This document shows, in pieces, positions 2,241 through 61,094 of a stretch of 64,000 bases of DNA; positions within the stretch are counted from its first letter, which is position 1; every line of letters begins with the position of its first letter. Made by a program: the position numbers and the translations under genes. The DNA is from Lepidodermella squamata (lineage: Eukaryota; Animalia; Gastrotricha): contig JBLDXI010000033.1 in assembly GCA_047495785.1 (NCBI GenBank), forward strand, positions 186,001 through 250,000, written 5' to 3'. The notes below the pieces were generated by a model. The model ran no database searches, was not told the origin of the DNA, and saw only the letters and a program-made list of their open reading frames with translations.

Positions 2241-3041
2241 AACTTGCTGCCCTCGTCAGCACGATCCGCCACCAACGCCAGCCAGGCCGCGAATGGTCTA
2301 ACGATAATGATCAAATGAAAAGCACCCTAAAACGGCTGATTTCAATCGGCAGTTTACCCATAGCCGCCGGATCGAAGGCTGAAATGACCTTCCTGTTCAC
2401 TCTTTACGAACTATGCCTCTACGTGAAAACCGGCGCAGGTGGCACTCGGCCGTTGTATAATGCCGGCCTCATGCGAATCTTCAAACAAATACCCCTGGTC
2501 AAACGGCTGTTTTCACCCGATGTAAATTTCATGCAGATGTCATTTTTCGAGACCGTGGTAATGCAACTGGTTTTCAAACTGCTGATTCACCTTGTACCGA
2601 ACGATACCGAGGAACTGGACCTTCGAGACCAGGCCATGCGCGATCTTGTTACCACCCCGAATTTCGTCGAATTCATGTGTGAATTGGGCCGGCAGTTCAC
2701 GAGGCGAGATGTGATGCGACTTTTGACCCAGTCGCCGATACATCGATTCATTTTCAAGCGGTTTGTCGCCCTGATGATTCCGTTAGATGACAGCCCTGTC
2801 ATGCGGGAACGCTTTGTTAAGGGGCACTACCCCTTATGTGACCCTACGTTTGGGGTCTACATCTGGCTGACAGGGTTCTGTACGTCCCCAAGGTTGGACG
2901 TAAGACCTGGTGGGCCGTTTGGCATGGCTTTGGCGAGGCTGGGTAATTTGACGGATGAGTGCTCGAAATGGTACTTGGAACCGTGGCGGAAGGCGTCGAA
3001 AGCCGAACTTGGCAACGCTATAACGATTGCTTCGAATCTTG
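2241..3041 (+). CDS. TPR-family array gene G1, exon B (conserved core, unknown domain); exon A lies upstream of the window
   Basis: Acceptor tttaatttag|AA and donor CTTG|gtaaat. 801 nt, phase 1-1. Motifs RPLYNAGLMRIFKQIP, DQAMRDLVTTPNF, DDSPVMRERFVKGHYPLCDP and KASKAELGNAI are shared with five other copies. Confidence 0.85.
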
Positions 3042-3214
3042 GTAAATATTTTGATTTGAAAATACTGCAAATGCAAACGTATTGTTCCTTGAATACTACT
3101 GAAATATTCTGAAATTCACAAGATTTCAAATTTCAAACTGATACTTTTAAAATCGAATGTTGACGAGTCGGAATTCGGAATTGGTCGGAAAATAGTTGCG
3201 GAGTTAGGCTTCAA

Positions 3215-3778
3215 TCATTGTTTAGACTGCTCTAGGTAATTTATCGATCTACCACGCCGGAACCCAAAAGGATAAAAATCCAGCTGGGCAGGAAGCGACA
3301 ACCTCAACGCATTTATCCACGCCATAGGCGGGACCCTGCGTGCCAACCACACACTCTCGGCTTCAATTAAGAAATCCGTGAGCGTTTGCTTGCCAAGCAC
3401 GAATTTGCCAACCTGCGGAATGGTCGAATCCTCCGTGGGCAGAGTTTTCAGCGTTGCTCCTTGAAAGCTCGCCATCAACCTTATCAACCTTATCCACCTT
3501 GATCCACCGTAAACAACCAAATAAAGGAGGGAGAAAAAAATTCAGCTACTACTACAACCAACTTCCGGGTCTCGGTGCCAGTGTGACGGTCCCCGGTTTA
3601 AGCAACTAGACTGAATTAACAAACAGCTTTATTCGTAAGAGAACTGATCTTCAGGGCCACATAGGGCCAGTTTATATACAGCAGGGGCACGCGACCCTGG
3701 GTTGGCGGGATGTGACAGGTGGTCCCTTGGCAGGGGTGCAGCAACGGGCGCGTGCCAACCAAGTGACCGCCGGTCACA
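3215..3778 (-). mobile_element. Truncated LTR retrotransposon (Ty3/gypsy-like): 5' LTR 3582-3778, PBS, start of gag
   Basis: 197-bp LTR with TGTGAC...GTCACA ends and minus-strand TATATAAA and AATAAA. It is followed by TGGCACCGAGACCCGG (PBS-like) and a gag-like ORF at 3215-3520. Confidence 0.65.
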
Positions 3779-4335
3779 CAGATCTCAAGGACATATTTCA
3801 TTCTTCGGCCTCATCAGCGGCGCGCTGGCGGACGGGCAACAGGTTGGCCAGGTACCTTGCCAGACTTTAAGTCTAAACCATGCTGGTTCACAGACCGGCT
3901 GAGCGAGCGCCACAACCGCTGCCAGTTGTAGCCCTGGTAGAGACGTTGCAATTGGCGGCCGTTTATACCCGGTGGCGCGGCGAGGACGGGTTCATTCATG
4001 TTGTTCTCGGAAATATAGTCGATTAGTAAATTAGATGGCCCTTGAAAACTTTGGGAATCGGCAATTTCACTCATCAATACATGAAAATCAGTATTAACAT
4101 ATCAACCCAGCCGAAAATTGATTAAATTCGGCTGGTTGCAAAAACATTGGTTTGAAAAGAGCGACGTTCGACTAGTAAGAAAACATTGATCTTTTGAGAG
4201 ATCAGTAGACAATTCGGCTAATCAAAGTCGAATTATAAAAAGGAATAAACCTAATGGTACTCAGCCGAGGGGTCCAAGAGACATCTAAATGAACAGAAGG
4301 GTTCAAAATCAACTTCTTCCTAAACTTGCCGAGCG

Positions 4336-5094
4336 TTAAAAGTTCGAAGACATTCGTCTCGGGGTCAACATCAACAAATGAATATTGAAGATTGAAGATT
4401 GAATGAGCAAAGCCACACGCCGAATGTTCGAGGCAGTGTTGTCATCGTCTTTGAAATAAGGATCGCCCTCGATTGGCGACAGGGGCCGGTCCTTGCACAT
4501 CTTGCCAACGATTCGCGCGCGTCGACCAGAACGTCCTGCTAGCAGCCGTTCTTCTTTGTCCACGGGCTCGTTATACATCGTCCGCTTGTAGATGAGAGAA
4601 GTGAAAATTTTGAATTCGCCGTCGCGCTCCGCAAATGATTTAATGACTTGTCTGACACCTTTGCCAAGCTCCTTAAAGACCAGTCCAGTCTCCCGGAAAG
4701 GCGCCAGTATAAATTCTTCGGCAAATGCGATCACCACAACTGCGTTAACTGCATCCGTGAATGACCAGGGCTGAAAGAGGCGGATCGATTGATGTGCTGA
4801 TTTATCCGAGCAAATTTCTTCACATGTTTCGGCGAGGCTAAGTTGTATCAAATATTGAGCAGCGAGTACCTCACCACCCCAAGGAAGAGGTTATGCATGG
4901 GTTCAACCGGGCACTGCTTGGTTGGGCCGAATCCGGGAATGTCGAGAACGCAAGCCCACTCATTTAGGCCTTTTGAGTGAATCCAGTTTCGTGTAGCCGC
5001 TTCTCGCCTCATTTCATCGGTTCGGGTTTCATAGTTACCGTTAGGGTAAACAGTATTGTTGTTGCACCGTTTGCAGTGAAAACAAATCCTTGCT
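4336..5094 (-). mobile_element. CACTA/EnSpm-like transposase remnant
   Basis: Minus strand 5093-4851 reads CFHCKRC...ETRTDEM...GLNEWACVLDIPGFGPTKQCPVEPMHNLFLGVV, matching the (D/E)xMHxxxLG motif of CMC-EnSpm transposases. The frame stops at 4848-4850. Confidence 0.55.
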
Positions 5095-5668: not shown

Positions 5669-6171
5669 GGCATCTCATTTACTTCATTGCCCGCCAAGAA
5701 CATGAAATCTATATCACCCCAACGTTATTCTGGCAAGGTGCAACTGGGGATAAGACAATTGCCGAAGCTTGCGGCAACAATCCATGCTTTGCGTTTTACG
5801 TTTCTCGCAATCTACCGATCGTAATGCGCGACCTACGCCGACTCTCCCACGATTTTCTTATCCGGAAAGACGCCAATAATTTTGTCCTACTTCTCGCGCA
5901 TGTCACTGCCAGATTGAATAGGTTGGATCCATGCTGGGAATCTCCACCGTGTTACCACGGCTTGAAGGGCAGTTTCGTCGAAGATCTGGCGCTGTTTGCC
6001 AAGTCACTCAAATCTGGATGGTTGCCGAATAACGACCCAGGATACGCTCGTTCATTGCAGTACAACCTCAGTCACGTGCTGTGCGGTTTTTCGAAAATTT
6101 CGAAAAAATTCGAAAATGACATCAATTCTATCGATTCAGCTTGGAGACGACCTAATGAAATCCCTGTGTAA
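5669..6171 (+). CDS. G1 exon C (terminal)
   Basis: Acceptor cattttag|GG CAT restores GHLIYFIARQ in phase 1. Shares FxxYxxxNL, WExPP and KGSFxEEL-type motifs with the other C exons. Confidence 0.85.
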
Positions 6172-6693: not shown

Positions 6694-8047
6694 ATGAACG
6701 CGTTTGAGACATTTTTCGGTAAAATTCAATATGGCGACCAAATTTCATCTTCGAATACTTTCAACGATACCGGAATCTTGAAATTACTATCCGAGCTGAA
6801 ATCTGTCGAGGAAATAAAAAAGCTACATCAAGAAATTCGAACGGATTTAAGCGGTGACGAATCAGCTGTGAAAGATATCGCTGATAAACAGGAACAACTT
6901 CGATTGAAAGGCAACGAATTGTACGAATCCGGCGATTTAGAAGGCGCGTTGGAAATGTACAAATCGGCGATTTACTCCCCCGATTGGCCGCCACCTAGCG
7001 ATACTCGCTTCTACACAAATTCTTCTCAGTGTCTTATTCAGTTGAAACGGTATGAAGAGGCGATTCTCTACTCGAAATTGGCGCTTCAAATCGATCCGAA
7101 TTCGTACCGAGCGTGTCAGTTTTGCATGTGGGGTTTCACGCATCTCGGCTATGATCACATGGCAGAGCACTACGGACACATTATGACCATGAAAATCAAC
7201 CCACAAGCCCATCCTGGGTTCGTTGTTCGAGTCATGGCAATTATGCTGAAAATTCGAAAAGCTCGACCGCCTAATTTTCCGACTCGCCACGATTGCCACA
7301 GTTGTCACGATGGCAAAAATTGTGAACATCTTAAAAATTCGATTAAACGGCTTATTTCAATTGGAAATTCAACGATTAACGAGGGAATTTTCCTATTCAC
7401 CCTGTATGAACTGGTACAGCACGAGCATCAATGCGAAAATGGATGTCGACCGTTGTTTGACGCTGGTTTTATGCGAATTTTCAAACAAATTCCAGTGATT
7501 AAACGGCTGTTTTCACCCGAATTTGACTTTTCGAAATTGAATTTCTTCGAGGCGATGGTTATGCAATTAGTTTTGGAAATCACAACTCACATGATTCCGC
7601 AGAAAGTTGAGAATGTGAATCTCAAAGATCAAGCGATGCGCGACTTGGTTACTACGCCGAATTTTCTCGAATTTTTATGCGAATTAGCCCGGCAAGTTGT
7701 TCGACGTGAAAATTTGCGACTTGTTGTTACTTCTCCAATTCATCGATTTATTTTCGAGAATTTCGTGAAATTACTGCTGTGTTTATTTGAAAGCCCAACG
7801 ATGCGTGACCGATTCATTGAAGGTCATTTGCCGCTATGTGACCCGACTTTCGGCATCTATTTATGCATGGCTGCGTTTTGTTATTTACCGATTGATCTGA
7901 AAAATGATAAAAACCAGCTATTTCTTGCGACTTTGGAGTGTCTCGTTAATACGGCTGAAAAATGCCCGGATTGGTACTTCGGGCCGTGGAGGAAAAAGGC
8001 GTCAAAAGAAGAAATTGGAAATGCGATTTCTATCGCTTCAAACCTCG
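6694..8047 (+). CDS. G2 exon 1 (fused A+B): TPR domain plus conserved core
   Basis: ATG at 6694. TPR motif LKGNELYESGDLEGALEMYKSAI...FYTNSSQCLIQLKRYEEAILYSKLALQIDP runs without an intron into the exon-B-like core. Donor CTCG|gtttgt. Confidence 0.85.
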
Positions 8048-8099
8048 GTTTGTATACCTTTCCGAGCATTAATTTGAAATTTTCATCATTTTTTTCAAG

Positions 8100-8608
8100 G
8101 TCAAATAATCAACATTCTAGCCCGGCAAAACGCTTTTCGATCTAATTTTTCTCTGACTCCGTTTTTCGAAATCGTAACCCGGGATAAGAAGTTGGCAGAG
8201 TCATGCACTTCTCAAGCCTCCTTCGCTCTTTACATCTCTGAAAATTTGCGTCATTTCATCCGTGAATTCAGAAAAGAACCGCGAATATTCACCTATAGAC
8301 GTGAAGTCGATAATTTGCTGCAAAGTCTCGCGAGAATTGTGGCGAAAATCGATCATCTGGATGAGTTTTGGGGTTCACCGCCTTGTTACTCGGGTTACGA
8401 GGGTAGTTACCTTGAAGAATTGATATTGCTCGATCAAACAATCAAATCACCCGGCTTTTTTCTTGCGAAGAGCGATCCTGATTTTGTGGCTAAATTGAGG
8501 CGAAATGTCATCGTTATCCTGTCCGGTTTCGCGAATAATTCGAAAAAGCTAAGGAAAGATATCGAGTCAAATGCTAATTGCAATGCATTTTTTCTTAATC
8601 GTGGTTAA
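8100..8608 (+). CDS. G2 exon C (terminal), after a 52-bp intron (8048-8099)
   Basis: Acceptor tttttcaag|GT gives GQIINILARQ...DKKLAESC, in frame with ORF 8192-8608. Spliced CDS is 1863 nt (620 aa). Confidence 0.85.
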
Positions 8609-8930: not shown

Positions 8931-9462
8931 ATGAAGACGTTCGAAACCGTGTTCGGAAAATACGACTATGGCGATCCGATTACATCGTCTGATTGCTGGG
9001 GCAGCGCTGACACTCTCAATTTAATCGCTGGTCTCAAATCAGTGGAAGACGTTTACCGACTCCACCAGCAAATTCGAGTCGAATTAAACGGTGGTGAATC
9101 ACTGATGAAAGAAGTCGAGACCAGGCAAAATGAACGCCGCCTCGACGGGAATAAATTGTTCGAGGCTGGCGATTTTGAAGGGGCATTCGGAGCCTACAGG
9201 TCCGGCATTTGTTCCGCCGATTGGCCGCCACCGCGCGATGCTCGTTGGTACACGAATGCTGCTCAATGCCTGATCCAGCTGCAGCGATTCGAGGAGGCTG
9301 TTGTCTACGCGAAATTGGCGTTTCAGATCGATCGGAATTCTCTAAGAGCATGCCAGCTGTGTGCGATCGCTTTCACGCATTTGGGCCACGATGACGTTGC
9401 TAAGGACTACATCAGAGCAATGCTCCTAGTCAAGCCTCGAGCAACTTCCAGTTTTATTAAAG
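8931..9462 (+). CDS. G3 exon A (TPR domain)
   Basis: MKTFETVFGKYDYG...GNKLFEAGDFEGA...WYTNAAQCLIQLQRFEEA. Donor AAAG|gttagc, phase 1. Confidence 0.85.
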
Positions 9463-12090
9463 GTTAGCGTTGCTTTTTTATGTAGGCTTCAAATTATTGT
9501 CAGAAAAACTATATCCAATATGTTTTTGAAAAGTCAATGAGTTGTTCAATGAGTAATAATTGATTAAAGTTGAGCTTTTTTTCTTCTCCATCGAAGCCAT
9601 AATCGAATTTCGAATTTTTTCTACGCCACTGTAAAATAATATACTCGTTTTTGATTACTCTGATAATAGGGCAGGCTATTCGAATTACATTGCGTGGGTA
9701 AAATGGGGTAAATTTTCTTACCATCAATTTTGAGGCCTAATCCCAAATTCTTTCTTCTCAGCAAATGCAATTTTTTACCGCGAAAAGTTGGCTAAATTCT
9801 TGTTGGGTCGAAAAATTTTCCACAGCGTCGCGAGTTTCATCTAATTCTCTGCGATTCGCGTCAATTAGCCTAAATGTTGAACAGTTGCACAAGGAAGGAG
9901 GAATCATATGAGATGAAGCTATAAAGTCGACTAAAATCCTTTGAAACAAGTTAGTTCAATTTCCAAAGGCCATGTAGTGGTTTCCTGTGTAGTAGAAGTG
10001 ATGAGTGCGACCAGTTTCGCGGCTAGCCGGCTAGATTGGCTAGCTTGGAAGGAAGCATAGTCAGATCTTTCTTCAGCACCAACATTCCCATCGGACTCTG
10101 CTTCGGAAGCTGAATCAAACTTCAACGCCTTGGAAGCTTTTTTCGGACGACCACGCGACGCGGTTAAGGTCCTTCTTTGTGAACCCGTTTCGCGACTCCA
10201 AGCCGTTATTTGTAGACGAGTAATTTGAAGCCCCTTCGTGCCAATAGCATAGATCGCCTTAGCTTGAGAGGCAAGTAAATTCAATGAACTCACCAATGAT
10301 TTATCGTTTGCGAAACGACTTGATGAAACTTTTAGCATGCTTATTGACTTGCCACTTGCGAACGAATCAAGGTCAGTTCGTTGCGATCCAGTTCATCCCA
10401 ATACTTGTTAATCCGCTACGAGCGCTACGCCTTTAACTCCTACAACTTCAGTTCATCGGCGTTCATAACCAGACTAGCTTTCGAGCAGTGCGAACAGCGA
10501 TGAACACCACTTTCTTCGACCTAATTGTACAGATAGCCTTTGCAGAAACAAACCTTCCCGCCGCGAGTACTATCAACAAATAAGTCAGGAATTTATTCAA
10601 TCTTCTTCTTGGTTGTAGTGGCAGCAGGTAGGGGATTCGGCGGCGGAAGATTCTCTTGATACACGGCTAACGGCAGATTCTGCTGAATTTGAACAACTCA
10701 TTGCCTTTTCCCTTCGAAAATATGACGCTGCATCTAATACTTGAGTTCGTAAGAAAAGCCGATGAACGGCAAATAGAATTCAAAAATATCAAAGATTCAG
10801 CCTTAGCAGGGCCGAGTCGATTACGCTGAAGACAGGCGACTGAAAACAGATTATTGGAGGGATTGCCAGCAGCTTGCGAGCAAGGCCAGCCATCGAGAGA
10901 TTTTTGTGGCGATTCATTTGTCACCAGAAAAGTTGGTCGTGGTGTGAAATCGACCGAACTTTGTAGAAACCGTGAATCTCATCCTCGTAGGTAGGCCGCC
11001 CTAGCCGAATCGTGATTATTTTTAAGAATTTGTAAAATTCCGAAATAGCTAATTTCTATTCACCAGAAGACAACATTGCCTAACAACGATGTAATCGATG
11101 TGAAATGTGGTTACTGGACGCCGCAAAATTGCACACAAAAAACGCGATTCTTTGTGATCTTATTGCAGAGAGAAAGAGACATAAAATCACAGGTTCGAGG
11201 AGTTGCTGGCCGATGGGCCCAAAGATAACCAAAGATTCCTTAGAGGAGACAACTGTTCTTCTCCAATCGCGAATTCTTTTCAATTCTGAAATAAAAAATA
11301 TTGATCATTTTCGTTCTCTGCACGACTCTCGCCTCAGCCTCATGTCATTGTGAGCAATGCTGTTCAAGTAAAGGTGATCAGTCATTGGATTTCTTTAAGG
11401 CTTATATAGCCGACAGAACGCCTAATTGAATTAATTGTAATGATTATTGTAATGTATTGCGACACGTGATATTGCTGGCACGAGGGATGGCTTGTGATGA
11501 GAAATAACTAATGAATAATAATTGGAATCCAGAACTGGGTCAGAGATCATAGCAATCCTCTTAATTACTTGACTCTCGAGCGAGCCATAGAACCCATGCT
11601 ACTGTCAAGCTTTTCCCAAAGCCTTTTGCTGATATCAGGGTTTTTTTCGAAGAGTTCCAACTATTGAATGAGCTTTCTGTCGAGTTTCCAAGGAGATTCA
11701 TTCGATGGATCGTCCCGCCATGCCGATGTTGACCTGAAAAAGCATAAACGATCCTTTTTCAAAGGGGTGGAATGGACTATTTTCTTTTTGATCATTCAAC
11801 TCGGTGATTTCTCAATTGCCGCGAATCTTTCACGCCCATCCAATTAGAAAGAAAGGTTAGCATCCGTGAGCAACTTTTTCAAATTAGACGTACAGGTCTT
11901 GACTCGTATTAGATAGTTACAAGCCTTAGTATTGAACATATTTTATAAGAGAGAGATTGAAATATGGGCCATGCTTGTATCTGGTTGGATTTTATTATTA
12001 ACGTTGCAACTTATGTATTATATAAGAATATAAGATTATAAGAAGCACCATCAGCCGTGACTGGTTTGGGGCAGTAGTCTGAATTCCATT

Positions 12091-15000
12091 TCGTCGTTGT
12101 CGGTTTGAAAGGGGCCGCAATATTTTTAATTAGCCCGCTTTCGTAGGTACTCATTTATTTTATTGATAAAATTGATATCACCATTTTTGTCTAACTGAGG
12201 CCTATCCATTGGTGACGATTGTGATTTCGTTATCACCTTTGGGTCCAGTTAAAACCGCAATTGGGCGAAATAACGGTTTATTGTTATTATGCCGACTCCA
12301 TCACATAGTTGCTATTATGTGTCGCGCGATGCCGCTCCCTCGGGATTCAGCGTGATTCTGCATTCCAATATAGCCAGTTTTACAAGAAAAAGGGTGTGTC
12401 ATAGATGATACATAGATTGAAATTCTTATTGTGGAGTTGCTCGTACGAGCGGCAGGCTTAGGGATAGCTCACACCTCACACCTCACCCACGAAAAATATA
12501 ATTCCTCTTAACAATTTCCTAAAATTTGATGAGCTCCATCTTTGGAAACTCAAGAAGCGCGAAAATAATTCATCGAAATCGAAATAGAGCTACAACTGAA
12601 AATACTACCAATATAATTAACCCTCAAATAAATTTTTCGTAGTCATGTCTACAAAATTTGTGCCGCTGCAATCGACGCATTTCTGACATGTCTGATAATA
12701 TCGAACTTCTCTAAATAATAAGCAAACCCAATACACGATGATTCAAGCATTTATTGTATTGGTGTTTTCACTTGCTTCAGCTCTTATTTCGGATGAAGAT
12801 GGATGGCATGCTTTCTTGGCCCCAACTGCTCTGTGCTGAGCAGTTTGGCGACGACCCTAAAAAGTCCGCTGAGGCATGCCTTAGCTATCTATCATCTAAG
12901 AGGCTGACTGAAACATACAGCCTGGACCACATTTTATTGTGCTATTAAACGCATCGCACTGAGGATGAATCCGGCCCCGGGTGATCTGTGAAGAGAACTT
13001 TGGCGACGACCCTAAAAAGTCCGCCGGCCTCAGTAAGATGCACCTTAGACGTCCAGAAATGTATATCGCTTACTCGAAAAGTTCGCTTTTTCATCAACTA
13101 ACTAGATGCTGAGATTGCAGCGCTGATTTCTTAATTTTTCCGGAAATTTAGTTCTTCTTTCGCAACGTTATATGGGATGATATTCGTTGTGGCTCTGTTT
13201 CAAGTCTGTATCAAATTTATGGGAAAATTATACCTGAAGAAAAGGGGATTTAGACATCTGCCACTTGTATTGAGCATATTATTATGGTGCTCGGTTAGAG
13301 GGGTTGTGATCTAGTGATACTCATGGTAAAAATTGTTTTCAATCGCTAATTAAGTCATATTAGCCTATTTTGTTGAGTTTCGACCAAGGAAGCTTCAGAG
13401 CTACTACTTTAAAATATAAACATTTGTCTGTAAAAAATTGCAGTTTGCATTTTCATCCGGTTCTTCCGCTAATGCATCTGACGGTATAAAATAAACCCTG
13501 GATTTAACCCTTTCTATTCACAACACAATGCCTGAAATAAGGACGTTAAATGAAGCTTATTCATTTGGTCATTCATTCTAACCCTTTCTATAGCTAGATA
13601 GTTAAGCGCCGATCACAACCCCGTAAAAAAGAGTGTGTATATTTGGATAAAAAAGGAATAAGATTTCGCGTTATTAAAGAATTCCCATGGGACTGCTTCA
13701 CGTCAGAATATAACAAACCATATTCCGCTGAGAACCAAGTGTGGCAAAAAAAACCAGTATGAGACAAAAAACAGCAAAAAACAGAAAACACAAGTTGAAA
13801 TAAAGAAAGCCGGATATTGATCAACGCCAGGCCTCCGGTAATTTAACCATTAACGTAATTTAACGTCGATTGTCTTAGCGCGAGGAAGACGATGGCCGGT
13901 TACAGGCAAAAAATGAAAAATCCACGTTGAAACATAACAATTTCACCTTTTTGCGAATATCTCGTGACATGCTGCAAGTCAAAAGTAGGTATAGTCTCAA
14001 AAAAGTCATTATACGGAACTGGTAGCACAAATTTAACACAACTACGGTAGTGCTACGGTAGCGCTACGGCGAGTGCTATTCCAGTGATAGAACAATATTT
14101 CGTAGCACTTTTGGGTGCTACGGCCAGCATGAAACTTTGAAGAACATCGAAAAAGCCATAGAGATCTGATTAATAAGAGAGGAAATCAGATTAATGTAGG
14201 TACATGGTACATGTAAGTGGCTGAACTTGCCCTTTGTATTCTAATCCATTTTCCTCAATGATTGTTAAACTTAAATTCTGTAATAATTTTTGATTGAATT
14301 AGGAAAATAAAATACAATACAATACAAACTGATGAAGAAAAACCTGTAAAAAATCATTTCGCATTTTTTCATTAAAGAGGAATTTTAATAATATTTGCCA
14401 CATCGAGCTTATGGGAAAACATCAAATTTAGTCATCGCAGGGGGCGTATGTTGGAACCTTCCTTATGTTGGATTAAGGTTTAAGGTTTAAGTTTTCGTCT
14501 CATTTCCAAAGGGATAGCTGTCATGTGCCCGAATGAAAAACACCCGAATGTCATGTAAGCGATGACATATACCCGAAAGCACTTGCACGAATGTACTAAC
14601 GCCCGAAAGCTAATTCCCGAATGACAAACACCCGAATGTCAAACACCCGAATATTTTTTTGGTACATAATCACTGAAACTGGGTGAAAATCAACATTTAA
14701 TACATCAGAGACGATTTTTGATCGATCCCGTGAATGAATTCGGCGGTAGCCGGGCAACCACTACTTGCATTTCTCTGACAAACGACCAGCATGTTTGGCG
14801 TCATCAGGCCGTACCGAAGGGTTCAGGTTCAGCGGCACAAATTCGCGTTCGAAGTTGATGGTTGGCTTTACGGCGCCGACAGGCACTGGGTGAATGCTGA
14901 CAATCAGCGGGTAACTTATCTCGTTTGTCAGAGAAATGCAAGTAGTGGTTGCGGCTACCGCGGAATTCATTCAATGGCTATAACTGTCTAAATAATGTCT

Positions 15001-18000: not shown

Positions 18001-18146
18001 GTGATAACGAAATCACAATCGTCACCAATGGATAGGCCTCAGTTAGACAAAAATGGTGATATCAATTTTATCAATAAAATAAATGAGTACCTACGAAAGC
18101 GGGCTAATTAAAAATATTGCGGCCCCTTTCAAACCGACAACGACGA
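12091..18146. mobile_element. 6,056-bp foldback-type element / giant inverted repeat (arms 12091-13871 and 16366-18146; spacer 2,494 bp)
   Basis: Equal-length 1,781-bp arms. Mirrored identical ORFs (12754+/17483-, 13594-/16413+). No mismatch in the segments compared by eye. ATTT directly repeated at 12088-12091 and 18146-18149. Confidence 0.85.
14512..15304. mobile_element. MULE-like non-autonomous element with 8-bp TSD (TTCCAAAG), CCCGAA subterminal repeats and a FLYWCH/WRKY-like zinc-finger remnant
   Basis: TTCCAAAG at 14504-14511 and 15305-15312. Arrays of CCCGAA(T) on the left and (A)TTCGGG on the right. Internal ORF DGWLYG...TYLVCQRNASSGC. Confidence 0.65.
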
Positions 18147-18383: not shown

Positions 18384-19184
18384 AAATCGCCTCGAAGCTC
18401 GACGCTATTCGAAGCCAGCGTCCGCCTGGACGTGGCCGCTATTTCGACTGCGAATCGCTAAAATCTGCGATGAAACGGCTGATTTCAGTCGGAAACCTCC
18501 CGATGACCAGCGGATCGAATGAAGAAATCACTTTCCTATTCGTCCTCTACGAACTAACTCTGCACGCGAAACAGTGCCCAGGTGGCTGTCGACCTCTCTA
18601 CGACGCTGGTCTAATGCGAATCTTCAAGCAGATTCCACTGATCAAGCGCCTGTTTTCGGCTGATTTCAACTTTTTGAAAATGACCTTCTTCGAAACTATG
18701 GTGATGCAACTCGTTTTCGCATTGCTCGGCAATTTGATGCCACCTGATACGGAAACAGTCGACTTGCGAGACCAGGCGATGCGTGACCTGGTCACTACGC
18801 CCGGTTTTGTCGATTTCATGTGCTCACTCGGCCGGCAAATGGCGAGGCGAGATGGAAGACGGCTTCTATCCCTATCCCCGATTCATCATTTCATCTTGGA
18901 GGGTTACATCGCCTTGATGATTCCGCTAGACGACAGTCCGGCGATGCGGGAGCGTTTTGTGAAGGGCCACATGCCGTTGTGTGATCCAACTTTTGCGGTA
19001 TACATGATGGTGACGGCGTTTTGTTCGTCTCCAGTGATTGCAGCGGAAGTGAAGCATCCGCTTGGAATGGCGATGGCGAGGCTGGGAAATTTGACGGATG
19101 AATGCGCGAAATGGTACATGGATCCGTGGCGAAAGGCTTCAAAAGCTGAGCTTGGAAACGCGATTGCCATTGCTTCGAATCTAG
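18384..19184 (+). CDS. G3 exon B
   Basis: Acceptor atcccag|AA and donor CTAG|gtaaat. 801 nt. Conserved core motifs present. Confidence 0.85.
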
Positions 19185-21742: not shown

Positions 21743-22245
21743 GTCATTTCATGTATTTCCTGGCTCGAGAAACCGACTGCGCGTTCTTCATGACCCCAAC
21801 GCTGTTTTGGCGAGTCGCTACCGAGGACAGAAAAATCGCTGAAGCCTGCGTCAAACAACCCGAATTCGCGTTGTACATCGCCAGAAATTTGCCCGGCGTT
21901 ATTCGCGATTTCAAGCGCGAACCTCGAAACTTTTTCTACCGAAATGATATTTTTGGCTCGTTCAACCTGCTCCTGCAAATCGTGGCTTATACGAACAAAT
22001 TGGATTCGTTTTGGGAATCGGAGCCAGTCTACTGCGGCCTGAAAGGCAGTTTCATCGAGGAGATGTGTTCTTTCCTGAAAATCGCGAAATTTTCACCCGG
22101 CAGGCTGCTTCCGGAAGATCTCGAATTTTTGGAAAAATTGTCGCGAAGTGGCGGTGCTGCGATGATGGCTTTGTCATTGGCTTCAAAGAAATTCGATCGG
22201 GAAATTTCGTCAATCATCAAGAAAGAAGATTTAATGTCGCAATAA
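21743..22245 (+). CDS. G3 exon C (terminal); spliced G3 = 611 aa
   Basis: Acceptor aattttag|GT CAT TTC ATG gives GHFMYFLARE. 532+801+503=1836 nt. Confidence 0.85.
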
Positions 22246-22354
22246 TTTGTTATCATTCAAACTTTTATAAGTGGCGCAATTTACAAGCAGAATATTTTCC
22301 TTATATTTCAAATAAAATTAAACATTAAAATTGTTATTTTTTAGGCGATTGAAA

Positions 22355-22889
22355 ATGAAATTATTCGAAACTTTATTTGGTAAATTTGAGTATGGTGAAC
22401 AAGTCACGTCATCATTTTGGGACGGTGATGAAACCTTGAATCTACTCTCCGACCTCAAATCAGCCGATGATGTGCGGAAATTACATAAGAAAATTCGAGT
22501 CGAGCTGAACGGTGGCGAAAAACTGGCCGAAGAAGTCACTGCCCGGCAGGAAGAACGCCGATTGGCGGGTAACAAATTGTATGAAGCTGAGCAGTATGAA
22601 GAAGCCCTTGAAACGTACAAATCAGCAATTTGCTCCGCTGATTGGCCACCGCCTGAAGATTCTCGTTTTTACACGAATGCGTCGATGTGTTGCATTCAGC
22701 TCGAACGATATGAGGAAGCAATAATTTATTCGAAATTGGTGCTCCAAATCAACGATAAGGCGTTTAAAGCCTGCCAACTTTGCGCTATGGCCTTCATGCA
22801 TCTAGGCTATGATGAATTGGCTGTTGGACATATTAACGGTTTGCGCCAGCTGATGGGCGATTCCCGGAAAAGTACAGAAATGTACATAG
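22355..22889 (+). CDS. G4 exon A (TPR domain)
   Basis: MKLFETLFGKFEYG...GNKLYEAEQYEEALETYKSAI. Donor ATAG|gtaaga. Confidence 0.85.
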
Positions 22890-23981: not shown

Positions 23982-24782
23982 AGCTCTTCAGAAAATGCGA
24001 ATCGATCCAAATCCATCGCCGCCCCGTCCGTCAGAAATTCTGCGACCACGAATCGATGAAAGCCGCCATAAAACGGCTGATTTCACTCGGCAATTCGCCG
24101 ATGAACAATGGATCTCCAGAGCAAACCACGTTTTTATTCTTGCTCTACGAACTTCACGGCTACGCGAAGCAATATCCTTGTGGCGCCCGGCCTTTGTACG
24201 ACGCCGGGCTGATGCGGATTTTCAAACAAATTCCGTTCATCAAGCGATTGTTTTCTCCTGAAATCGATTTTATGAAAATGTCGTTTTTCGAGACAATGGT
24301 TATGCAGCTTGTTTTCTTCCTGTTGCAGTTTCTTATTCCGCCAACGACTAAAGATCTCGATCTCCGAAACATGGCTATGCGTGATTTGTTTACCACGCCG
24401 AATTTCATCGAATTCATGTGCGAATTCGGCCGGCAAATGGCGAAACGGAGTGGCATTCGATTGCTGACCATCTCCCCGATTCATCGCCTGATTTTGAACA
24501 GATTTGTCATTCTAATGGTGCCGCTTGATGACAGTCCTGTTATGCGGGAGCGGTTCGTTAGAGGTCACTACCCGCTGTGTGATCCAAGTTATAGCGTTCA
24601 CATGTGGATTGCGGGGTTTTGTTCGTCGCCTGAGTTGCTGATTGAGGATGGCCATCCGTACGGCATGGCGCTGGGTAGGCTGGGAAATCTATCGAATGAG
24701 TGCTGGGAATGGTGGTTGGAACCGTGGCGGAAAGCGTCGAAAGCCGAACTTGGCAACGCGATTGCTATCACTTCAATTTTAG
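23982..24782 (+). CDS. G4 exon B
   Basis: Acceptor aatttcag|AG and donor TTAG|gtattt. 801 nt. Confidence 0.85.
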
Positions 24783-25960: not shown

Positions 25961-26169
25961 GAACAGGACGACCCGTTTGAATCTCGAAAGCGAGAGAATG
26001 ATAGCAAACGAATTGTTTGCTGAAAAGCCGGCATTGACAGTCCTACTGCCGTTTCTCAGCACAGCTACGTGGTAACTGAGCTTGAACTTGACGAAGTCTG
26101 CCCAGCTTGTAAAGCGGCACTCATTAGAGGGAATGATGAAGCTGATGAAGCTAAGTTCCTCAATCCGTT

Positions 26170-27465: not shown

Positions 27466-27992
27466 GCCATCTTCTGTATTTCATCGCTCGGCAATGCAGA
27501 AGCGAAGGGATGTATCTGACGCCGAGTCTCTTCTTCCGAATCGTCGCTTCTGAGAAGAAAATGGCAGCAGCGTTCGCCAGACAACCATCTTTCGCTTTTT
27601 ACACTGCTCGAAATTTGCCTGGGGTGATTCGCGACTTCATTCGGGAACCGCTGGATTTCGCCTATCGACGAGATGTCAGAAATTTCACGCTCTTGCTCTT
27701 CCTAGCTGCTAGTCAAATGGAGGACGCTGCTTCGTGCTGGGAAAAGCCTCTTGTTTTCTCCCAGCAAAAGGGCAATTTCATCGAGGAATTGATAAGATTA
27801 CGAAAGGCTCTGAAACCTCCCTGTAATTTGTTGAAAAAAGACACAGATCCGGAATGGAAGAAAATGGTCCTTCAACATGTCAGTGCGGCTATATATTTTT
27901 TGGCTAAAAATTCGAAGAAATTCGACGCCGTTATTCGTTCGATTGACAAGGAGGCATTGCGTGAAATTGGGTCGATCACCATTTTCGAATAG
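27466..27992 (+). CDS. G4 exon C (terminal); spliced G4 = 620 aa
   Basis: Acceptor ttttctag|GC CAT gives GHLLYFIARQ. 535+801+527=1863 nt. Confidence 0.85.
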
Positions 27993-28063: not shown

Positions 28064-28420
28064 ATGGGACGGCAATGAACATTCGTACAATATTTCCGAG
28101 CTGAAACCAGTCGAAGATGTGCCAAAAGTGCATTTGGAGATGAGAGTCGATGAATTTGCTGCAAGGCAAGAAGAACATCGATTTATTGGCAATGCATTTT
28201 TTCGAAGCTAAACGATGCGCTGAATTCTGCTCCACATCAATCAGCGATTTGCTCAGCCGATTGTAAATCACCTGTCGAAACTCGGATCTCGGATCTACAA
28301 GGTTTCGCCTTCATTGTGCTCATGGTACGTATCAGGTCGCCGCATGCGCTCTAACCCACAAGGCTTTGATGAAGGGATGGCGGAACCTCGACGCACTTGG
28401 TCACTGCGGCTACATTATAG
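28064..28420 (+). pseudogene. Decayed orphan exon A (TPR) of the array
   Basis: WDGNEHSYNISELKPVEDVPKVH...AARQEEHRFIGN, then SAICSAD after frameshifts and deletions. Ends at ATAG|gtaaat like the intact exon A donors. Confidence 0.7.
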
Positions 28421-32122: not shown

Positions 32123-32651
32123 ATGAAGCTATTCGAAACGCTATTTGGTAAATTTGAGTATGGCGAAAAAGTGACAACTTCAAACTGGGACGGCGAAGAA
32201 ACGCTGAACCTGCTCGCTGGCCTGAAATCTGTCGAAGATGTGCGAAAATTGCATCAGGCAATTCGAATCGAAGTTGGCGGTGGTAAAAAATTGGTCGGAG
32301 AAATTGCAGCTCGGCAAGAAGAGCTTCGGTTAAAAGGCAACAAATTGTATGAAGCTGAGCAGTATGAAGAAGCCCTTGAAACTTACAAATCGGCAATTTG
32401 TTCCGCTGATTGGCCACCGCCTGAAGATACTCGCTTTTACACGAATGCTTCGCTGTGTTGTATCCAGCTGCAAAGATTCGAAGAGGCGGTCGTCTACTCC
32501 AAGTTGGTCCTTCATTTTGCTGAGAGTCCACATAGAGCGTGCCAACTCGCCGCGATCGCTCTAACCCACCTTGGATTTGATGAAATGGCAGAAGATTTCG
32601 TAGGCGTGATGGAACACATGAAGATACCTGCTAAGAAATCTTTTATTCAAG
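32123..32651 (+). CDS. G5 exon A (TPR domain)
   Basis: MKLFETLFGKFEYG... Donor CAAG|gtaaat. Confidence 0.85.
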
Positions 32652-35097: not shown

Positions 35098-35901
35098 AAA
35101 CGATGGATAAATGCGACGAGATTGTGGGTCAACGTCCATTGGGCCGCACCCGTTCATTCGATGTCGACAGCATGAAATCGGAACTGAAAAGCCTGATATC
35201 ACTCGGAAATTTGCCAACGCCAAGCGGTTCGAAGGAAGAGATGAAATTCCTCTTCACCCTGGACAAGCTGGTTTCCTTCGCTGTTAAGGACGAGGGCAAC
35301 ATCGACCGACCCCTCTATCAAGCTGGGATCCTGCGAATTTTCAAACAAATTCCGCATGTCAAGCGGCTTTTCTCGCAGGATATTGTTTTTTCAAGCCTGT
35401 CATTCTTCGAGACTGCCGTTATGCTTTTGGTTTTCCGAATTATTCTGTATGTGGTGCCGCGAGATACCACCAATATCGACCTACGTGATCAAGCGATGCG
35501 CGATTTAGTCACCATACCGGGCTTTATTGAATTTATCTGTGAACTGGGCAAGCAGATCGTGGGCCGTGATACGATCCGCTTGTTAACCCTTTCTCCGATG
35601 CATCGACAAATTTTCGAGCACTATTTGGCCCTTTTCCTAGCCTTTGACGACAGCCCAGCCATGCGTGACCGCTTTGTCAAGGGTCATTTTCCGATTTGTG
35701 ATCCAACGTTTTCTATATATACTTGGATAGCGGGGTTTTGTTCTTCGACCAAGTTGGTGATCGAAGATGGCAATCCGTTTCCTATGGTTATGATGAGACT
35801 GGGCAGTCTTGCGGCCGATTGTCCTGAATGGTTTTTGGAACCGTGGCGCCGTGCCAGTGAAGCTCAGCTCGGAAACGCGATCATCATCGCTTCAAATCTA
35901 A
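35098..35901 (+). CDS. G5 exon B
   Basis: Acceptor cattatag|AA and donor CTAA|gtaagt. 804 nt (one extra codon). Confidence 0.85.
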
Positions 35902-39601: not shown

Positions 39602-40119
39602 GTCATATCCTGTACTTCGTATCTCGTGAAAATAAAGGCACTGCGAAATACATGTCACCGAGCTATTTCTGGCAAAAAGCGGCCAAAGACCGCAAAATCG
39701 CTGAAGCCTGTGCCAGACGACCGGCATTCGCGTTTTATGCGGCTCAAAATCTGCCCATCGTAATCCGAGATTTCAAACGCGCACCGACGAATTTCTTCTA
39801 CCGCAAAGATGTCGTCACCATATCGCTGTTGTATCTGCAAATTTTGAGCTTCGTCAAGAAACTCGACTCATTTTGGGAGAAATCACCGATTTTTACTGAA
39901 TCCAAGGGCAATTTCATCGAAGAACTTGTTCTTTTAGCGAAAGATTTTCGACCACCTAGGCAATTTTTGCGAAATGATCCCGAACAAATGCTGATCGCTA
40001 ATATTGTCAATAATGTTTACGTAACAATTCATTTGCTCGCTCAATTTTCGAAGAAATTCGAAGTTCTCATCTTCACTATCGATCCGAACTGCCCGAGGCT
40101 TGAAATGGTATCCAACTGA
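39602..40119 (+). CDS. G5 exon C (terminal); spliced G5 = 616 aa
   Basis: Acceptor aattttag|GT CAT gives SHILYFVSRE. 529+804+518=1851 nt. Confidence 0.85.
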
Positions 40120-43196: not shown

Positions 43197-43441
43197 TAGT
43201 GGTCGTATTTTCATCGAAAATGTGGTGTTATTAAAAATTGACAAAAATTGAAAAATTCGTTACTGTTTTTTCTTTTTAATTACCAAACATTTACGGCAAA
43301 TATTTGCTAACTTGGGCCTAGCTCCTAGATTCGCTTGCTGCGAATCCTTTCAATTCCTGGTGAATAGCACAGCGTAGCCTAGTCAACGAGTGCGTGGTCG
43401 AACTCTCAAGTCGATTGATTATCGCAATATTTGAACCAGGA

Positions 43442-44551
43442 ATGTTTTTCCTATTCATCATACTCTCGAACGTAGGCTCTAGCTGGCAATTCTCGGAAAT
43501 AGCGAATGCTAGAAGTATAGCTTTGTTGAATAGGTGCAGTCACATGTCAGTTGAATCTATTAATCCACGCTGCAACTCTAGCAGCAGTTTCGCCTACTCC
43601 GACCATTCCTGTATGCCAACGCCTGTTGAGATCAGCTTGATTGTCTATCGCAACTACGGAATCGACGACGTTGCTCAGAGTTTCAAGCTGCTGATCAACA
43701 TTCCAGTCGTTTGGACTGTCGGCTGCAAGGAACTGATATATGACGAAGCAGAAATATTCTATCCAAATGCATCGCTTTTCTGGATCCCTATGATGTATCA
43801 CGACAATTCCATGCATGATCCTGCCATGAAGCATTTTCAGAAGGAACTACTGGTTAAAACGCAAGTGATTACTGCTACATTCCAGATGACACTGCGAGGT
43901 GTTATCACTTCCCAATGTGACATCGACCTGACGAATTTTCCTTTTGACAACCAGAGATGTTCTATCCTTCTTCGCATTGGGAATGAAATGAAAAATGCCG
44001 GTTTTTCTGGGGTTCGCAAAGGCTTCTCACCTTCCGCTAGATACTTTGATAACTGTGAGTTGGTGGAGATTAATAATCGCGCCGCTCGCGGCAGAGGAAT
44101 TGAGCCTAGATTTGAATTATTATTCAGACGACGACCTCACTTCTATGTTTGGTTCTTAATGGTCCCTTGCATCATTTTGACGACGATGCAGTTCCTCTCT
44201 ATCGCTATTCATGCAACCAAGCCTTTGAGGCCAGGCTTTGCGATTACCGTTCTGCTCGCTATGGCGTTTTTGAGGCTTGAAATTAGCCGAAGGACTCCAG
44301 CAAAACCGGGACGGATGCTTCTAACCGATTTCACGCGCTCTTGTGAACTGCTGACACTGCTGATACATCATAGGTACGCATATGTAACGTGCTACATTGC
44401 GAAGAATTTCTCTAAATGGTTCAATCGGAACGTCATAGTTCGTGGGCGATTCAAGCTGTCTCTAAATAGGCTGATGGATGCCATAGCTTGTTCGGTAGCA
44501 CTTAGCGCATTCAGTCTAATTTGCATTTTCGTTCTTCGAGCTATTAAATGA
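43442..44551 (+). CDS. Cys-loop ligand-gated ion channel subunit, copy L2, 369 aa (M3 lesion)
   Basis: Cys-loop CDIDLTNFPFDNQRC. TM region nearly identical to L1 except TV->HHR in M3. Likely 5'UTR intron 43360-43439. Confidence 0.85.
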   Translation: MFFLFIILSNVGSSWQFSEIANARSIALLNRCSHMSVESINPRCNSSSSFAYSDHSCMPTPVEISLIVYRNYGIDDVAQSFKLLINIPVVWTVGCKELIYDEAEIFYPNASLFWIPMMYHDNSMHDPAMKHFQKELLVKTQVITATFQMTLRGVITSQCDIDLTNFPFDNQRCSILLRIGNEMKNAGFSGVRKGFSPSARYFDNCELVEINNRAARGRGIEPRFELLFRRRPHFYVWFLMVPCIILTTMQFLSIAIHATKPLRPGFAITVLLAMAFLRLEISRRTPAKPGRMLLTDFTRSCELLTLLIHHRYAYVTCYIAKNFSKWFNRNVIVRGRFKLSLNRLMDAIACSVALSAFSLICIFVLRAIK

Positions 44552-45315: not shown

Positions 45316-45844
45316 ATGAAGTTATACGAGACCTTGTTTGATAATTTTGAGTACGGCGAAAAGGTGAAGTCTTCCAGTTGGGATGGTGATGCAACTTTGA
45401 ACCTGCTTTCTGAGCTCAACTCTCTTGAAGACGTGGAACAATTGCACCGGAAAATTCGAGTTGAATTGGGCGGTGGCGAGAAATTGGTCAACGAAGTCGC
45501 TGCAAGGCAGGAAGAACGTCGAATCCTGGGTAACAAGTTGTTCGAAGCTAAAAAATATGAAGAAGCCCTTGAAACGTACAAATCTGCGATCTATTCAGCC
45601 GATTGGCCGCCGCCTGAAGACACTCGTTTCTACACCAACGCCTCGCAATGCTGTATTCAGCTGAGTAGGTTCGAAGAAGCGATAATCTATTCGAAGCTGG
45701 TCATGCGACTTGTCATGCGGCCTTTGAGAGCCTTTCAGTTGTGTGCTATCGCTTACTCGCATCTTGGCTATGATGAAATGGCTGAAGACTGCATAACCTT
45801 GATGAGAGCGATGAAGCCACCCGCTTCTAGGACTTTTGTTAAAG
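45316..45844 (+). CDS. G6 exon A (TPR domain)
   Basis: MKLYETLFDNFEYG... Donor AAAG|gtattt. Confidence 0.85.
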
Positions 45845-48057: not shown

Positions 48058-48858
48058 AATCTGCTGAGAAGTGTGAGCTGATAAGAAAACAGCGTCCACC
48101 CGGCCGAAAGCGAATTCTCGGCAGAGAGTCAATGAAAACTGCATTAAGGCGGCTTATTACAACCGGAAATCTGCCGATGAATCATGGCTCGATTGAACAG
48201 ACCACATTCCTCTTCACGTTAATTGAACTTGTGTCCTATGCTATTAAGGGTCCGACTGAGTTACGCCCCCTATATGAAGCTGGGCTCATGCGAATTTTCA
48301 AGCAAATTCCCTTGCTCAAGCGATTATTCTCGCCGGAAATCGATTTGGTGAAACTTTCAATTTTCGAAGCTATGGTTGTTCAGCTGGTTTTAGCGCTACT
48401 TGAGTACCTGGCACCCGAGCAAACCGATGATGTCGATCTCAAAAACATGGCAATGCGTGATTTGGCGACTATGCCTAATTTCATCGAGTTTATGTGCGAA
48501 TTGGGCCGGCAAATGACGAAACGTAGCGGCATTCGATTTTTGACTATCTCCCCGATTCATCGGCTGATTTTGGAACGATATGCTGGTCTCATAATTCCAT
48601 TTGACGACAGTCCGGCGATGAGGGAGCGGTTTGTCCGTGGCCACTATCCACTTTGCGACCCTTCGTTTGCTGTCTACATGTGGTTAGCTGGGTTTTGTTC
48701 ATCCACCGATATGGTCATGCGGCTAAATGAGCCGTTTGCTCGGGCTTTGGCTAGGCTTGGAAATCTGACGGACGAATGCTCAGAATGGTACTTGGAACCA
48801 TGGCGGAAAGCGTCGAAAGCCGAACTCGGAAATGCCATCGCTATCGCTTCCATTTTAG
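48058..48858 (+). CDS. G6 exon B
   Basis: Acceptor tttttag|AA and donor TTAG|gtaggt. 801 nt. Confidence 0.85.
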
Positions 48859-52098: not shown

Positions 52099-52631
52099 GT
52101 CATCTCATGTATTTTCTGGCGCGTCAATGCAAAGGCACCGTTCATTACATGACTCCGAACCTTTTCTGGCATGTCGCGGCTGATGACGTTAAAATCGCAA
52201 GCGCGTGCGTGAAGCAGCCAGCCTTCGTATTTTATATTACCCAGAATCTCGCTCAAGTCATACGGGACTTCCGCAACGATCCTTCCGATTATTTCCTCCG
52301 CAATGACGTCGATCGTTTGATCGACCTGATGATCAAAATCACTTATGGCGATGGCAAGAAACTCGCGTCATTTTGGGAGCGGCCGCCAATAGTCAGCGAA
52401 GATTTGAAAGGCAGCTTCATCGAAGAACTTATCCTTCTGGGCAAAGAATGTGACCGCATGTCAAAAAATGACAAAAAGCCGATTTATTTTGATAAGTTGA
52501 AGAAAAAAATTGTACTTTTCTTGGGATCGATGGCCGGCAAGTCGATGAAATTTGCTACTCTCATTCACCTGGTAGATCCGACTTGCTCGCTGTTCTTCCC
52601 TAACATGGAAGGATCCATTCGTGTTGTATGA
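52099..52631 (+). CDS. G6 exon C (terminal); spliced G6 = 620 aa
   Basis: Acceptor catttag|GT CAT gives GHLMYFLARQ. 529+801+533=1863 nt. Confidence 0.85.
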
Positions 52632-59019: not shown

Positions 59020-59215
59020 ATTATCTTTTATAGCATCACGGACAGCTTGCTTAAGGCGATGTGCCACGCAATGAAATATCCAGAGCAGACCGGAAATTAT
59101 TTTCAAAATGTTACCTCATCACAAATTACAAATTAAGATGAGTTTTGATCCAGAATAAATCGAACTAAATTACCGACACCTCCAATCACTCCCATCATGA
59201 CGCTAGCAATCCTGT
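59020..59215 (-). mobile_element. hAT (ZNF862/KIAA1586-like) transposase remnant
   Basis: Minus strand ASVMMG...GV and IFHCVAHRLKQAVRDA (CxxH motif). Confidence 0.55.
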
Positions 59216-59639
59216 CCAGTGGGCTTTGAGAAATTGCTCAGTAAGAGAAAGTTGAAACCGAATCAATCATTGATTTATTTAATGCTAATCAGTCCACTCG
59301 ACGATGGCTGGTCGAAAACAGAGCTGAAATTGTAATTAATATTTGTAGGCTGGTCGCCCAGCGCGGGGCTCATGGTCGGAAAAACCCATGTGAGCTTGAC
59401 GGACTCCCAGAACCGCTAGCCTGCAGCAAGTTGAAAATCTGCCCAAGTACACCGGCATTCGATTTTCAATTGCTGATGCTGTTGATGCTCCAGATATATA
59501 AATGGACAGCCGAAGCGTTGAGTTGTCTCAGTGTAGGCGATGCCTTAGCCTCGCCTTTTGGGCGGCGAATTAACAGAGTCTTCGCTGCTCGATGAGCCTG
59601 TCGCCGTGCTTATATATAAAAGGTCGTATTCCATGTGAA

Positions 59640-59930
59640 TTACCAATATTTTTTATGAAAATTCAAAGAAATCTCGTTCAAACAGTCCCAGCAGTCGTTT
59701 ATGATAAACAGTAGGAGTTCCGTACCTTCAGCTTCCTTAAATCTTGCATGTTTTGCGTCGATTTTGAGAAAGCTCAAAGCTTTTGCGACGCTCATTGAAA
59801 AAACTTGAATCGCATACTTGAATTTCATTGGCCATTTCTCCCATTCTGCATGATTTTTAGACAAGGAATTTGCCAGCTGCATGAGCTGCATGCTATCTTG
59901 AAGTTCAATCAGCTTATGGACGAAATTCAC
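59640..59930 (-). mobile_element. P-element/THAP9-like transposase GTP-binding-domain remnant
   Basis: LIELQ...LANSLSKNH...MKFKYAIQVFSMSVAKAL...FKEAEGT...IINDCWDCLN. Confidence 0.75.
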
Positions 59931-60888
59931 GTCAGCAACATATATTTTCTCATCAATATCTTCGAAGAGTGGTATCGTGGTGTCGTGGAGTGGATCGAAT
60001 GTAACACTGCTTTTCGAGGCGTGTTGTCATAACTATGGTCATTATTGGTAGTCATGTTAATCCGTTATCTCTGTTTACTGTCAGGGAAATAAATTCACAT
60101 AGGCCTTGAGAATGAAAGCTGGCAATTTCAGGGATCTTAGATTTGCGATTTATATTTGTAACGGGGGACCGGAGCTGGGAAGAAAAGGCGTCCTTTCTTG
60201 TTTAATTCACCGAAAAGAAAATGCCCTGATGGGAATATAATGAGTAAGCCCTTGGAGTCCCAAAATAGCGGCGAGAACACCTACCTAATGCTGTTCGACC
60301 ACGGCGCCGCTTGGCTCCGACCTTTTCGACTCGTTTCATCGTTTCTACGGTCAATTTTCGGCGGCCGTTGTACAGCTCAAAGCCGACGGTGTGAGAACAA
60401 ACGGATTCGACGTAATTTGTGAATGGGTTTTGTGGCAAAGCATGTGCCGTATCGCACGCGCCTTTTTCATTCTTCAAATTTCTGCGTTAGGTGATTTAAG
60501 TCGATTAGGTGGAATATGTGGATTAGTTGAATTAGGTGGATTCTGTTTCTTGATTTTGCTCCAGTCTTGAGCTAATGAGCTGGCTGGCGAACTCCGAATA
60601 TCAGCGAGAGCCTAGCGTTCAGCAATTCTGTTATAGATTCATTGGTTGATTTAGCTGCTGCTTGGTACCGGTTTTTACGGAGAGAACGGAGAGAAACTTC
60701 TGGTAAACCAAGAAGAAGGATTCTTCTATTTCCGATGTTTCACGTGATTGCGGCGAAGAATTAATAATTATTAATAAACCAAATAATGAACCAAAGAGTC
60801 ATAGAAGGCGCTTGACATTGGCATCGTGACATCGACATTGAATATTTTACTGAAATTGTTTAATACATTTTAATTATTTGCTTCCTAG

Positions 60889-61094
60889 GGCATCTCGTGT
60901 ATAATCTGGCGCGACAATACGAATGCATTATCAAACACATGAATCGGAACCTATTCTGGCCAGGCTTCGCTGGTGATAAGAAAATTCATTACCTGGTAGA
61001 AATTGCTCTGGGCGACTGGGCGATGGCTCGTCTCAGAAACATGAAGGATGCTTGTGAAGGCGAATGGTTCCGGAGGCTGAACTCGGCAATATAG
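60889..61094 (+). pseudogene. Orphan, truncated exon C of the TPR array
   Basis: Intact acceptor cttcctag|GG CAT gives GHLVYNLARQ...NLFWPGFAGDKKI, after which similarity is lost. Confidence 0.7.

Follow-up and report, generated by a model that had tools for sequence, protein, structure and literature searches.

A tandem array of TPR-plus-armadillo-like genes in the gastrotrich Lepidodermella squamata

Contig JBLDXI010000033.1 of the Lepidodermella squamata genome (assembly GCA_047495785.1) carries a long same-strand series of related exons of three types, A, B and C, and we analysed a 64,000-nucleotide stretch of it (positions 186,001 to 250,000 of the forward strand, hereafter the window). 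The locus raises the question of whether these exons form one combinatorial unit, wherein parts of different copies are joined to yield mixed proteins, or a row of conventional genes, and what kind of protein is made in either case. We consider it rather probable that this is an ordinary tandem array that arose by duplication, with seven separate genes in each of two copies of the block, and that each gene encodes a soluble adaptor of about 615 amino acids in which a tetratricopeptide repeat (TPR) head is followed by an armadillo-like body. The array is a real, intact and previously undescribed gene family, although its folds and its type of arrangement are familiar and its genomics are ordinary.

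In what follows, coordinates without a prefix are window positions, C33 is the contig that includes the window (C33:186001-250000), and C28, C7, C32, C54 and C59 are other contigs of the same assembly. The genome searched is this 121.2-Mb assembly of 151 contigs; the GC content is about 42%.

Gene models and selection in the array

There are five full copies and one fragment of exon A, six copies of exon B, and six full copies and one fragment of exon C in the window, all of which are located on the plus strand and were found by tblastn, with a single exon A, exon B and exon C as queries (E 1e-23 to 1e-124). Splice sites were read directly off the DNA to set the exon boundaries, and protein lengths are coding-sequence lengths summed from the coordinates. 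Every family intron in the window is of the GT-AG type and is in phase 1, such that a codon is split after its first base, and exon B is 801 nucleotides long in four genes (G1, G3, G4 and G6) and 804 nucleotides long in G5. An earlier note, made from the letters of this stretch, had reported the uniform phase and the four 801-nucleotide exons correctly. It had also described six same-strand paralogs with exons A, B and C. The tblastn hits and splice sites bear out the six paralogs, but the exon A of G1 lies about 1.2 kb upstream of the window start (C33:184274-184802), G2 has only two exons, and there is a seventh gene, G7, about 10 kb beyond the window end (C33:259937-270832).

Within the window, G1 (610 amino acids) is represented by exon B (2241..3041, phase 1-1) and by exon C (5669..6171), which terminates in the stop codon. 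G2 (620 amino acids) consists of a fused exon A+B (6694..8047) and an exon C (8100..8608), and these are separated by an intron of just 52 nucleotides (8048-8099) that is again in phase 1 with GT-AG ends. In the fused exon, A passes into B at exactly the position where splicing joins these two exons in the other copies, and therefore the A-B intron of G2 was cleanly lost. The remaining genes in the window have all three exons. G3 (611 amino acids) comprises exon A (8931..9462), exon B (18384..19184) and exon C (21743..22245), and its first intron measures 8.9 kb because it includes an insert of 6 kb. The exons of G4 (620 amino acids) are located at 22355..22889, 23982..24782 and 27466..27992, those of G5 (616 amino acids) at 32123..32651, 35098..35901 and 39602..40119, and those of G6 (620 amino acids) at 45316..45844, 48058..48858 and 52099..52631. 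The earlier note had also listed one orphan exon A and one orphan exon C. The former proves to be a decayed pseudo-exon (28065..28288, plus strand) in which an internal part is deleted and the frame is broken by a stop codon and a frameshift, and the latter is a truncated remnant with about 34 codons left (60885..60986, plus strand).

Each gene has its own ATG and its own stop codon, and a T-rich tract with an acceptor-type AG is located 10-24 nucleotides before the ATG. The start codon, the tract and the AG are conserved in a collinear second copy of the block, which is present on the minus strand of another contig (C28:1765797-1835909) and is 87-97% identical to the first, mostly 91-97%, with introns and spacers included. 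The collinearity between the two contigs (C33:184-500 kb against C28:1836-1541 kb, about 95% identical) spans at least 315 kb, and the region at C33:1.0 Mb is without a twin. The published assembly has just 2.8% duplicated BUSCOs (PMC11660948). The twin block is either a second haplotype left partly uncollapsed or a large segmental duplication of recent origin.

When the seven genes are compared in pairs, their amino-acid identity averages 56% in exon A, 54% in exon B and 36% in exon C. Thus, the contrast that the earlier note drew between a strongly conserved exon B and a much more variable exon C holds, but exon A is conserved to the same degree as exon B, and exon C is the variable part. 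The per-exon comparison of non-synonymous and synonymous substitution rates (dN/dS) that the note had proposed was carried out between the two blocks, exon by exon, by the Nei-Gojobori method. The ratios are 0.11 for exon A, 0.09 for exon B and 0.18 for exon C, and 0.12 overall, with 160 non-synonymous against 352 synonymous changes (p of about 1e-110 against neutrality). These low values between the blocks indicate that the genes are functional and that purifying selection acts throughout, with exon C about twice as free to change as exons A and B. All 20 of the comparable exons are intact in both blocks. The sole exception lies elsewhere, in exon C of the C28 copy of G1 (the counterpart of window position ~5713), where a 7-nucleotide tandem duplication shifts the frame 45 nucleotides into the exon. 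This copy of G1 is either a broken gene or the product of an assembly error at the duplication.

The TPR head, the helical body and their relatives

Exon A gives weak to borderline matches to the Pfam families TPR_8, TPR_2 and TPR_1. A profile built from its seven copies matches solved TPR domains, of which the best are SPAG1 (E 5.9e-11), Sti1 (3.6e-8), FKBP42 (1.5e-7) and CHIP (2e-7), followed at E values up to 1e-3 by RPAP3, SGT2, TOM70/71, PP5 and CNS1. As judged from these alignments, exon A encodes a TPR domain with three repeats, of the type found in Hsp70/Hsp90 co-chaperones. The two-carboxylate clamp of Hop TPR1 comprises five residues, namely Lys, Asn, Asn, Lys and Arg. Alignments to solved TPRs indicate that four of the five positions are kept in exon A, by the invariant residues R69, N73 and N108 and by either Arg or Lys at the fourth position, and the full five-residue clamp is present in none of the seven copies. 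There is also an invariant four-residue insertion, Trp-Pro-Pro-Pro (W97-P100), between TPR1 and TPR2. SPAG1, Sti1/Hop and CHIP carry the nearest solved sequence relatives of exon A (E 5.9e-11 to 2e-7) and share four of the five clamp positions with it, but their TPRs differ from exon A, which has the Trp-Pro-Pro-Pro insertion and a Leu or Phe in place of the last clamp Arg. In addition, these proteins have an RPAP3_C-like, DP or U-box domain behind the TPR.

The exons that encode the body behind the head, B and C, give no Pfam match at E<=0.1, neither to Arm or HEAT repeats nor to any other family. The exon-B profile gives only chance matches among PDB sequences (E 0.67 or worse), and it finds 0 proteins at E<=0.001 among 1.84 billion representatives. 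That set is evidently without this genome's own proteins, and thus gastrotrichs are not covered by it; family members may exist in unsampled relatives.

An AlphaFold2 model of exon B, made with its seven copies, is all helix (predicted local distance difference test score, pLDDT, 76; predicted template modelling score, pTM, 0.78). The query for a second model, which covers exons B and C together, was a natural open frame in the C28 copy of G2, wherein exon B is joined to exon C by 17 intron-encoded residues. In that copy (L031:940-2862, minus strand), the B-C intron is 51 nucleotides long, has GT-AG ends and is in frame and free of stops, and consequently a single open frame runs through B and C. 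A transcript that retained this intron would still yield a full-length protein with 17 additional residues. The copies of exons B and C were supplied as partial rows of the alignment, in which the first ~24 residues of six exon-C rows are misplaced, and the resulting model is likewise all helix (pLDDT 76, pTM 0.60).

The top Foldseek matches of the B+C model are designed armadillo proteins, importin-alpha, beta-catenin, APC and SYS-1 (probability 1.0, E 9e-4 to 2e-2). VIA-align gives Z scores of 10-12 to dozens of ARM/HEAT proteins, including p120 catenin, V-ATPase subunit H, Uso1/p115, Armc8, CNOT9, Ric-8A, HspBP1, She4p and axonemal ARM proteins. By predicted fold, exons B and C together form an armadillo/HEAT-like solenoid, which we assign to no named family and which is not a new fold class. 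The armadillo fold, a right-handed superhelix of three-helix repeats, is recognised here by comparison of the predicted models with known structures. The earlier note had considered this region all-helical and unlike any domain it recognised, and Pfam, the PDB and the AlphaFold2 models agree. It had also suggested comparison with ARM/HEAT and UNC-45-like folds. The first of these describes the model well, but the UNC-45-like match does not stand out, as She4p (Z 10.7) is tied with many ARM proteins.

There are 44 places in the genome that are recognised by the exon A profile. Fourteen of these are in the two blocks, and the others are in an array at C7:1.99-2.08 Mb and its twin on C32, with a few on C59, on C54 and elsewhere on C7. 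The C7 and C32 arrays hold at least 15 further members, whose TPR heads match exon A with E values of 1e-22 to 1e-5. Beyond the two blocks, a search with the exon-B profile picks up a single gene, in the C7 array (E 1.4e-7), and hhalign aligns the whole of exon B with residues 51-295 of the 664-amino-acid open frame of this gene (probability 95.9%, E 6e-9, 239 columns). A TPR exon is present in this nearest C7 gene, but its intron is in phase 2 and is located ~25 codons earlier, there is no B/C intron, and the exon-C profile gives no match to it. Thus, the C7 and C32 arrays share the head-plus-body architecture with the window genes, and in one member the body shows homology over the full length of exon B, whereas their open frames are longer (612-766 amino acids) and this nearest gene differs in the phase and position of its intron and in its C-terminal part, which is unlike exon C. 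On these profile matches, the window family is one branch of a wider orphan TPR-armadillo superfamily in this genome, in which only this branch has the three-exon phase-1 layout. The earlier note's proposal of a lineage-specific expanded family is in keeping with this picture, wherein close members are found only in the C33 cluster and its C28 twin, distant arrays are located elsewhere in the genome, and the 1.84-billion-protein set yields no match to exon B.

Possible functions and alternative readings

If the array indeed consists of separate adaptor genes, the parts of each protein suggest a division of labour. The TPR head would dock on the tail of a chaperone (Hsp70/Hsp90) or on a similar acidic C-terminal peptide. 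The body behind it, predicted to comprise ~430 amino acids of armadillo/HEAT-like helical repeats from exons B and C, might then use its conserved exon-B repeats to hold a partner common to all paralogs, whereas the variable exon-C repeats might confer each paralog's own client or site. The structure and intactness of the genes, the purifying selection on them, the type of TPR and the helical-repeat class of the fold are shown by the results above, whereas we infer the docking partner, the binding of clients and the independent expression of the genes. The link to chaperones that the earlier note had raised as one possibility is plausible, given that the TPR head belongs to the co-chaperone class, although the docking itself is part of the inference. 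The immune role that the note had named as the other possibility receives no support from these results.

Several observations weigh against this assignment. The fifth clamp position is Leu or Phe in all seven copies of exon A, while it is Arg in Hop, Sti1 and SPAG1, and this alteration makes the binding of an EEVD tail, and hence the identity of the docking partner, uncertain. Splicing, expression and the independence of the genes are deduced from the DNA sequence, and a canonical AATAAA soon after the stop codon is present in two genes only (G3 and G5). Low confidence in the B+C model is confined to the vicinity of the B/C junction (residues 271-307), which holds the 17 non-native residues, and consequently the mutual placement of the B and C lobes is not fixed by the model. 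In addition, the structural matches are generic, since helical repeats often give Z scores of about 10-12 and no family outranks the others. The dual interpretation of the C28 block, as haplotype or duplication, also counts on this side.

The alternative that survives best, although we judge it unlikely, is that the proteins have nothing to do with chaperones and are TPR-ARM scaffolds, such as ubiquitin-ligase substrate adaptors or intracellular sensors, wherein the TPR binds another peptide. The incomplete clamp with its Leu or Phe at the fifth position and the invariant insertion at W97-P100 would fit such a role, as would the fact that many of the ARM structural matches are ligase or scaffold proteins. 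However, the solved TPRs nearest to exon A all dock on Hsp70/Hsp90, and no ligase or sensor domain is found in the family genes or beside them within the window. Moreover, the dN/dS of ~0.1 bears no sign of an arms race.

The order of the parts, an N-terminal TPR of the co-chaperone type followed by ARM-type repeats, and the similar size also recall TTC12, a protein with TPR repeats and ARM domains (PMC10267457) that serves as a cytoplasmic dynein-arm assembly factor (PMC8836003). Perhaps the genes are very diverged true homologs of TTC12 that have multiplied in a heavily ciliated animal. When the A+B open reading frame of G2 is used as the query, the nearest clusters in the ESM Atlas are indeed TTC12 (score 0.92-0.94, 200-204 shared features), and the best solved TPR match, SPAG1, is another dynein-arm assembly factor. 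Without the TPR head, though, TTC12 is gone from the Atlas results, which then show low recognition and include unnamed clusters, TRPC4AP and Nup192-like proteins with at most 145 shared features. Thus, the TTC12 match is due to the TPR. The 1.84-billion-protein set, in which the exon-B profile finds nothing, should include animal TTC12s, and there is no Pfam Arm match in the window family. The body is without detectable sequence similarity to TTC12, both with the exon-B profile and in the Atlas search with the body, and the window family further differs in being multi-copy, in its changed fifth clamp residue and in being known from this genome only so far. These differences lead us to regard true TTC12 homology as improbable.

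The UNC-45/She4 (UCS) proteins provide a second point of comparison, as UNC-45 has a TPR head, these proteins hold a client with a long ARM body, and She4p is among the structural matches of the B+C model. In contrast, the window proteins have a much shorter body that gives no Pfam UNC45-central/UCS match (E<=0.1), and She4p does not rank above dozens of ARM proteins.

The remaining alternatives concern the manner in which the array is expressed. The distance from the stop codon of G3 to the ATG of G4 is 109 nucleotides (22245-22355), and this interval includes an AATAAA at 22311 and an acceptor AG at 22344. With the AATAAA located 28 nucleotides before the acceptor, the arrangement is operon-like and a joint G3-G4 precursor RNA is conceivable. 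The Rfam model for the nematode spliced leader SL1 finds no match in the genome, but this carries no weight, as the controls are likewise without a match. One possibility that builds on this spacing is that the superfamily (seven genes here and at least 15 on C7 and C32), which is possibly restricted to gastrotrichs, serves as a private set of chaperone-docking client adaptors and also produces mixed-exon isoforms from the joint precursors of some neighbours, such as G3 and G4. We hold this combination to be very improbable.

We give even less credence to a reading of the whole array as one combinatorial locus, in which an exon A is spliced onto the B or C exon of a gene further downstream to create mixed isoforms. 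The earlier note had pointed out this possibility, and it is correct that any join would stay in frame, because every intron is in phase 1 and the length of exon B (801 or 804 nucleotides) is a multiple of three, which permits A-B, B-C and A-C junctions alike. However, equal phase is predicted by tandem duplication alone, and the shared phase-1 introns are best explained as inherited through such duplication, rather than as a device for exon swapping. Every unit forms a complete gene that has a start codon, an acceptor before it and a stop codon to itself. G2 is without an A donor. G5 is separated from G6 by two unrelated channel genes and from G4 by remnants of transposons. The groupings by exon-wise identity are broadly alike for A, B and C (G1 with G3, G4 with G6, and G2 and G7 as outliers), and therefore no exchange of exons is evident. 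The protocadherin and UGT1A clusters resemble the array in their same-strand tandem repeats of similar exons, but they join many alternative first exons to one shared set of constant exons, and the window has no shared constant exons of this kind, as each unit is complete with its own stop. The use of exons across paralogs is thus unsupported, though not disproved. Finally, a pseudogene array is ruled out by the intact frames and the overall dN/dS of 0.12.

Neighbouring genes and insertions

Intronless genes that resemble Cys-loop ligand-gated channels and encode ~385-390 amino acids are interleaved with the array on the plus strand, at 40690-41862, 43394-44551 and 62421-63584 and, beyond the window, at C33:251736-252728. 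They match the Pfam family Neur_chan_LBD (E 3e-7 to 6.5e-10) and are 63-69% identical to one another. The copy at 43394-44551 is without a counterpart in the C28 block.

The first intron of G3 contains a perfect inverted repeat of 1,781 nucleotides (12091-13871 and 16366-18146) with a spacer of 2,494 nucleotides, and the C28 copy lacks the 6-kb insert in its entirety. The assembly was made from DNA amplified by multiple displacement amplification (MDA) (PMC11660948), a procedure that produces palindromic chimeras (PMC13265396). Because MDA generates such chimeras, an assembly artefact is a rival to a foldback element as the explanation for this repeat.

Near the decayed exon A in the interval between G4 and G5, the minus-strand segments 29184-29567 and 30444-30845 hold a fragment of a hAT transposase dimerisation domain (E 7.9e-10) and a gag-like zinc-knuckle open reading frame. 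These transposon remnants probably record the loss of an eighth paralog. The second intron of G5 includes overlapping low-complexity open reading frames (37458-38009), which are rich in Gly, Asn and Thr on one strand and in Pro, Val and Leu on the other and have no Pfam match. The minus-strand intronic open reading frames at 4339-4851, 9934-10338, 19854-20513, 25712-26179 and 37461-38009 likewise match no Pfam family.

Annotators of the Lepidodermella squamata genome are provided with a checked gene family through its exon models and through the selection demonstrated on it. If the role proposed for separate adaptor genes is true, a poorly sampled phylum would have assembled, from TPR and armadillo parts, a multi-gene set of chaperone-docking adaptors that is peculiar to it, with no detectable relatives elsewhere. 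The family would then be a useful case for studying the origin and diversification of client-specific co-chaperones or scaffolds.

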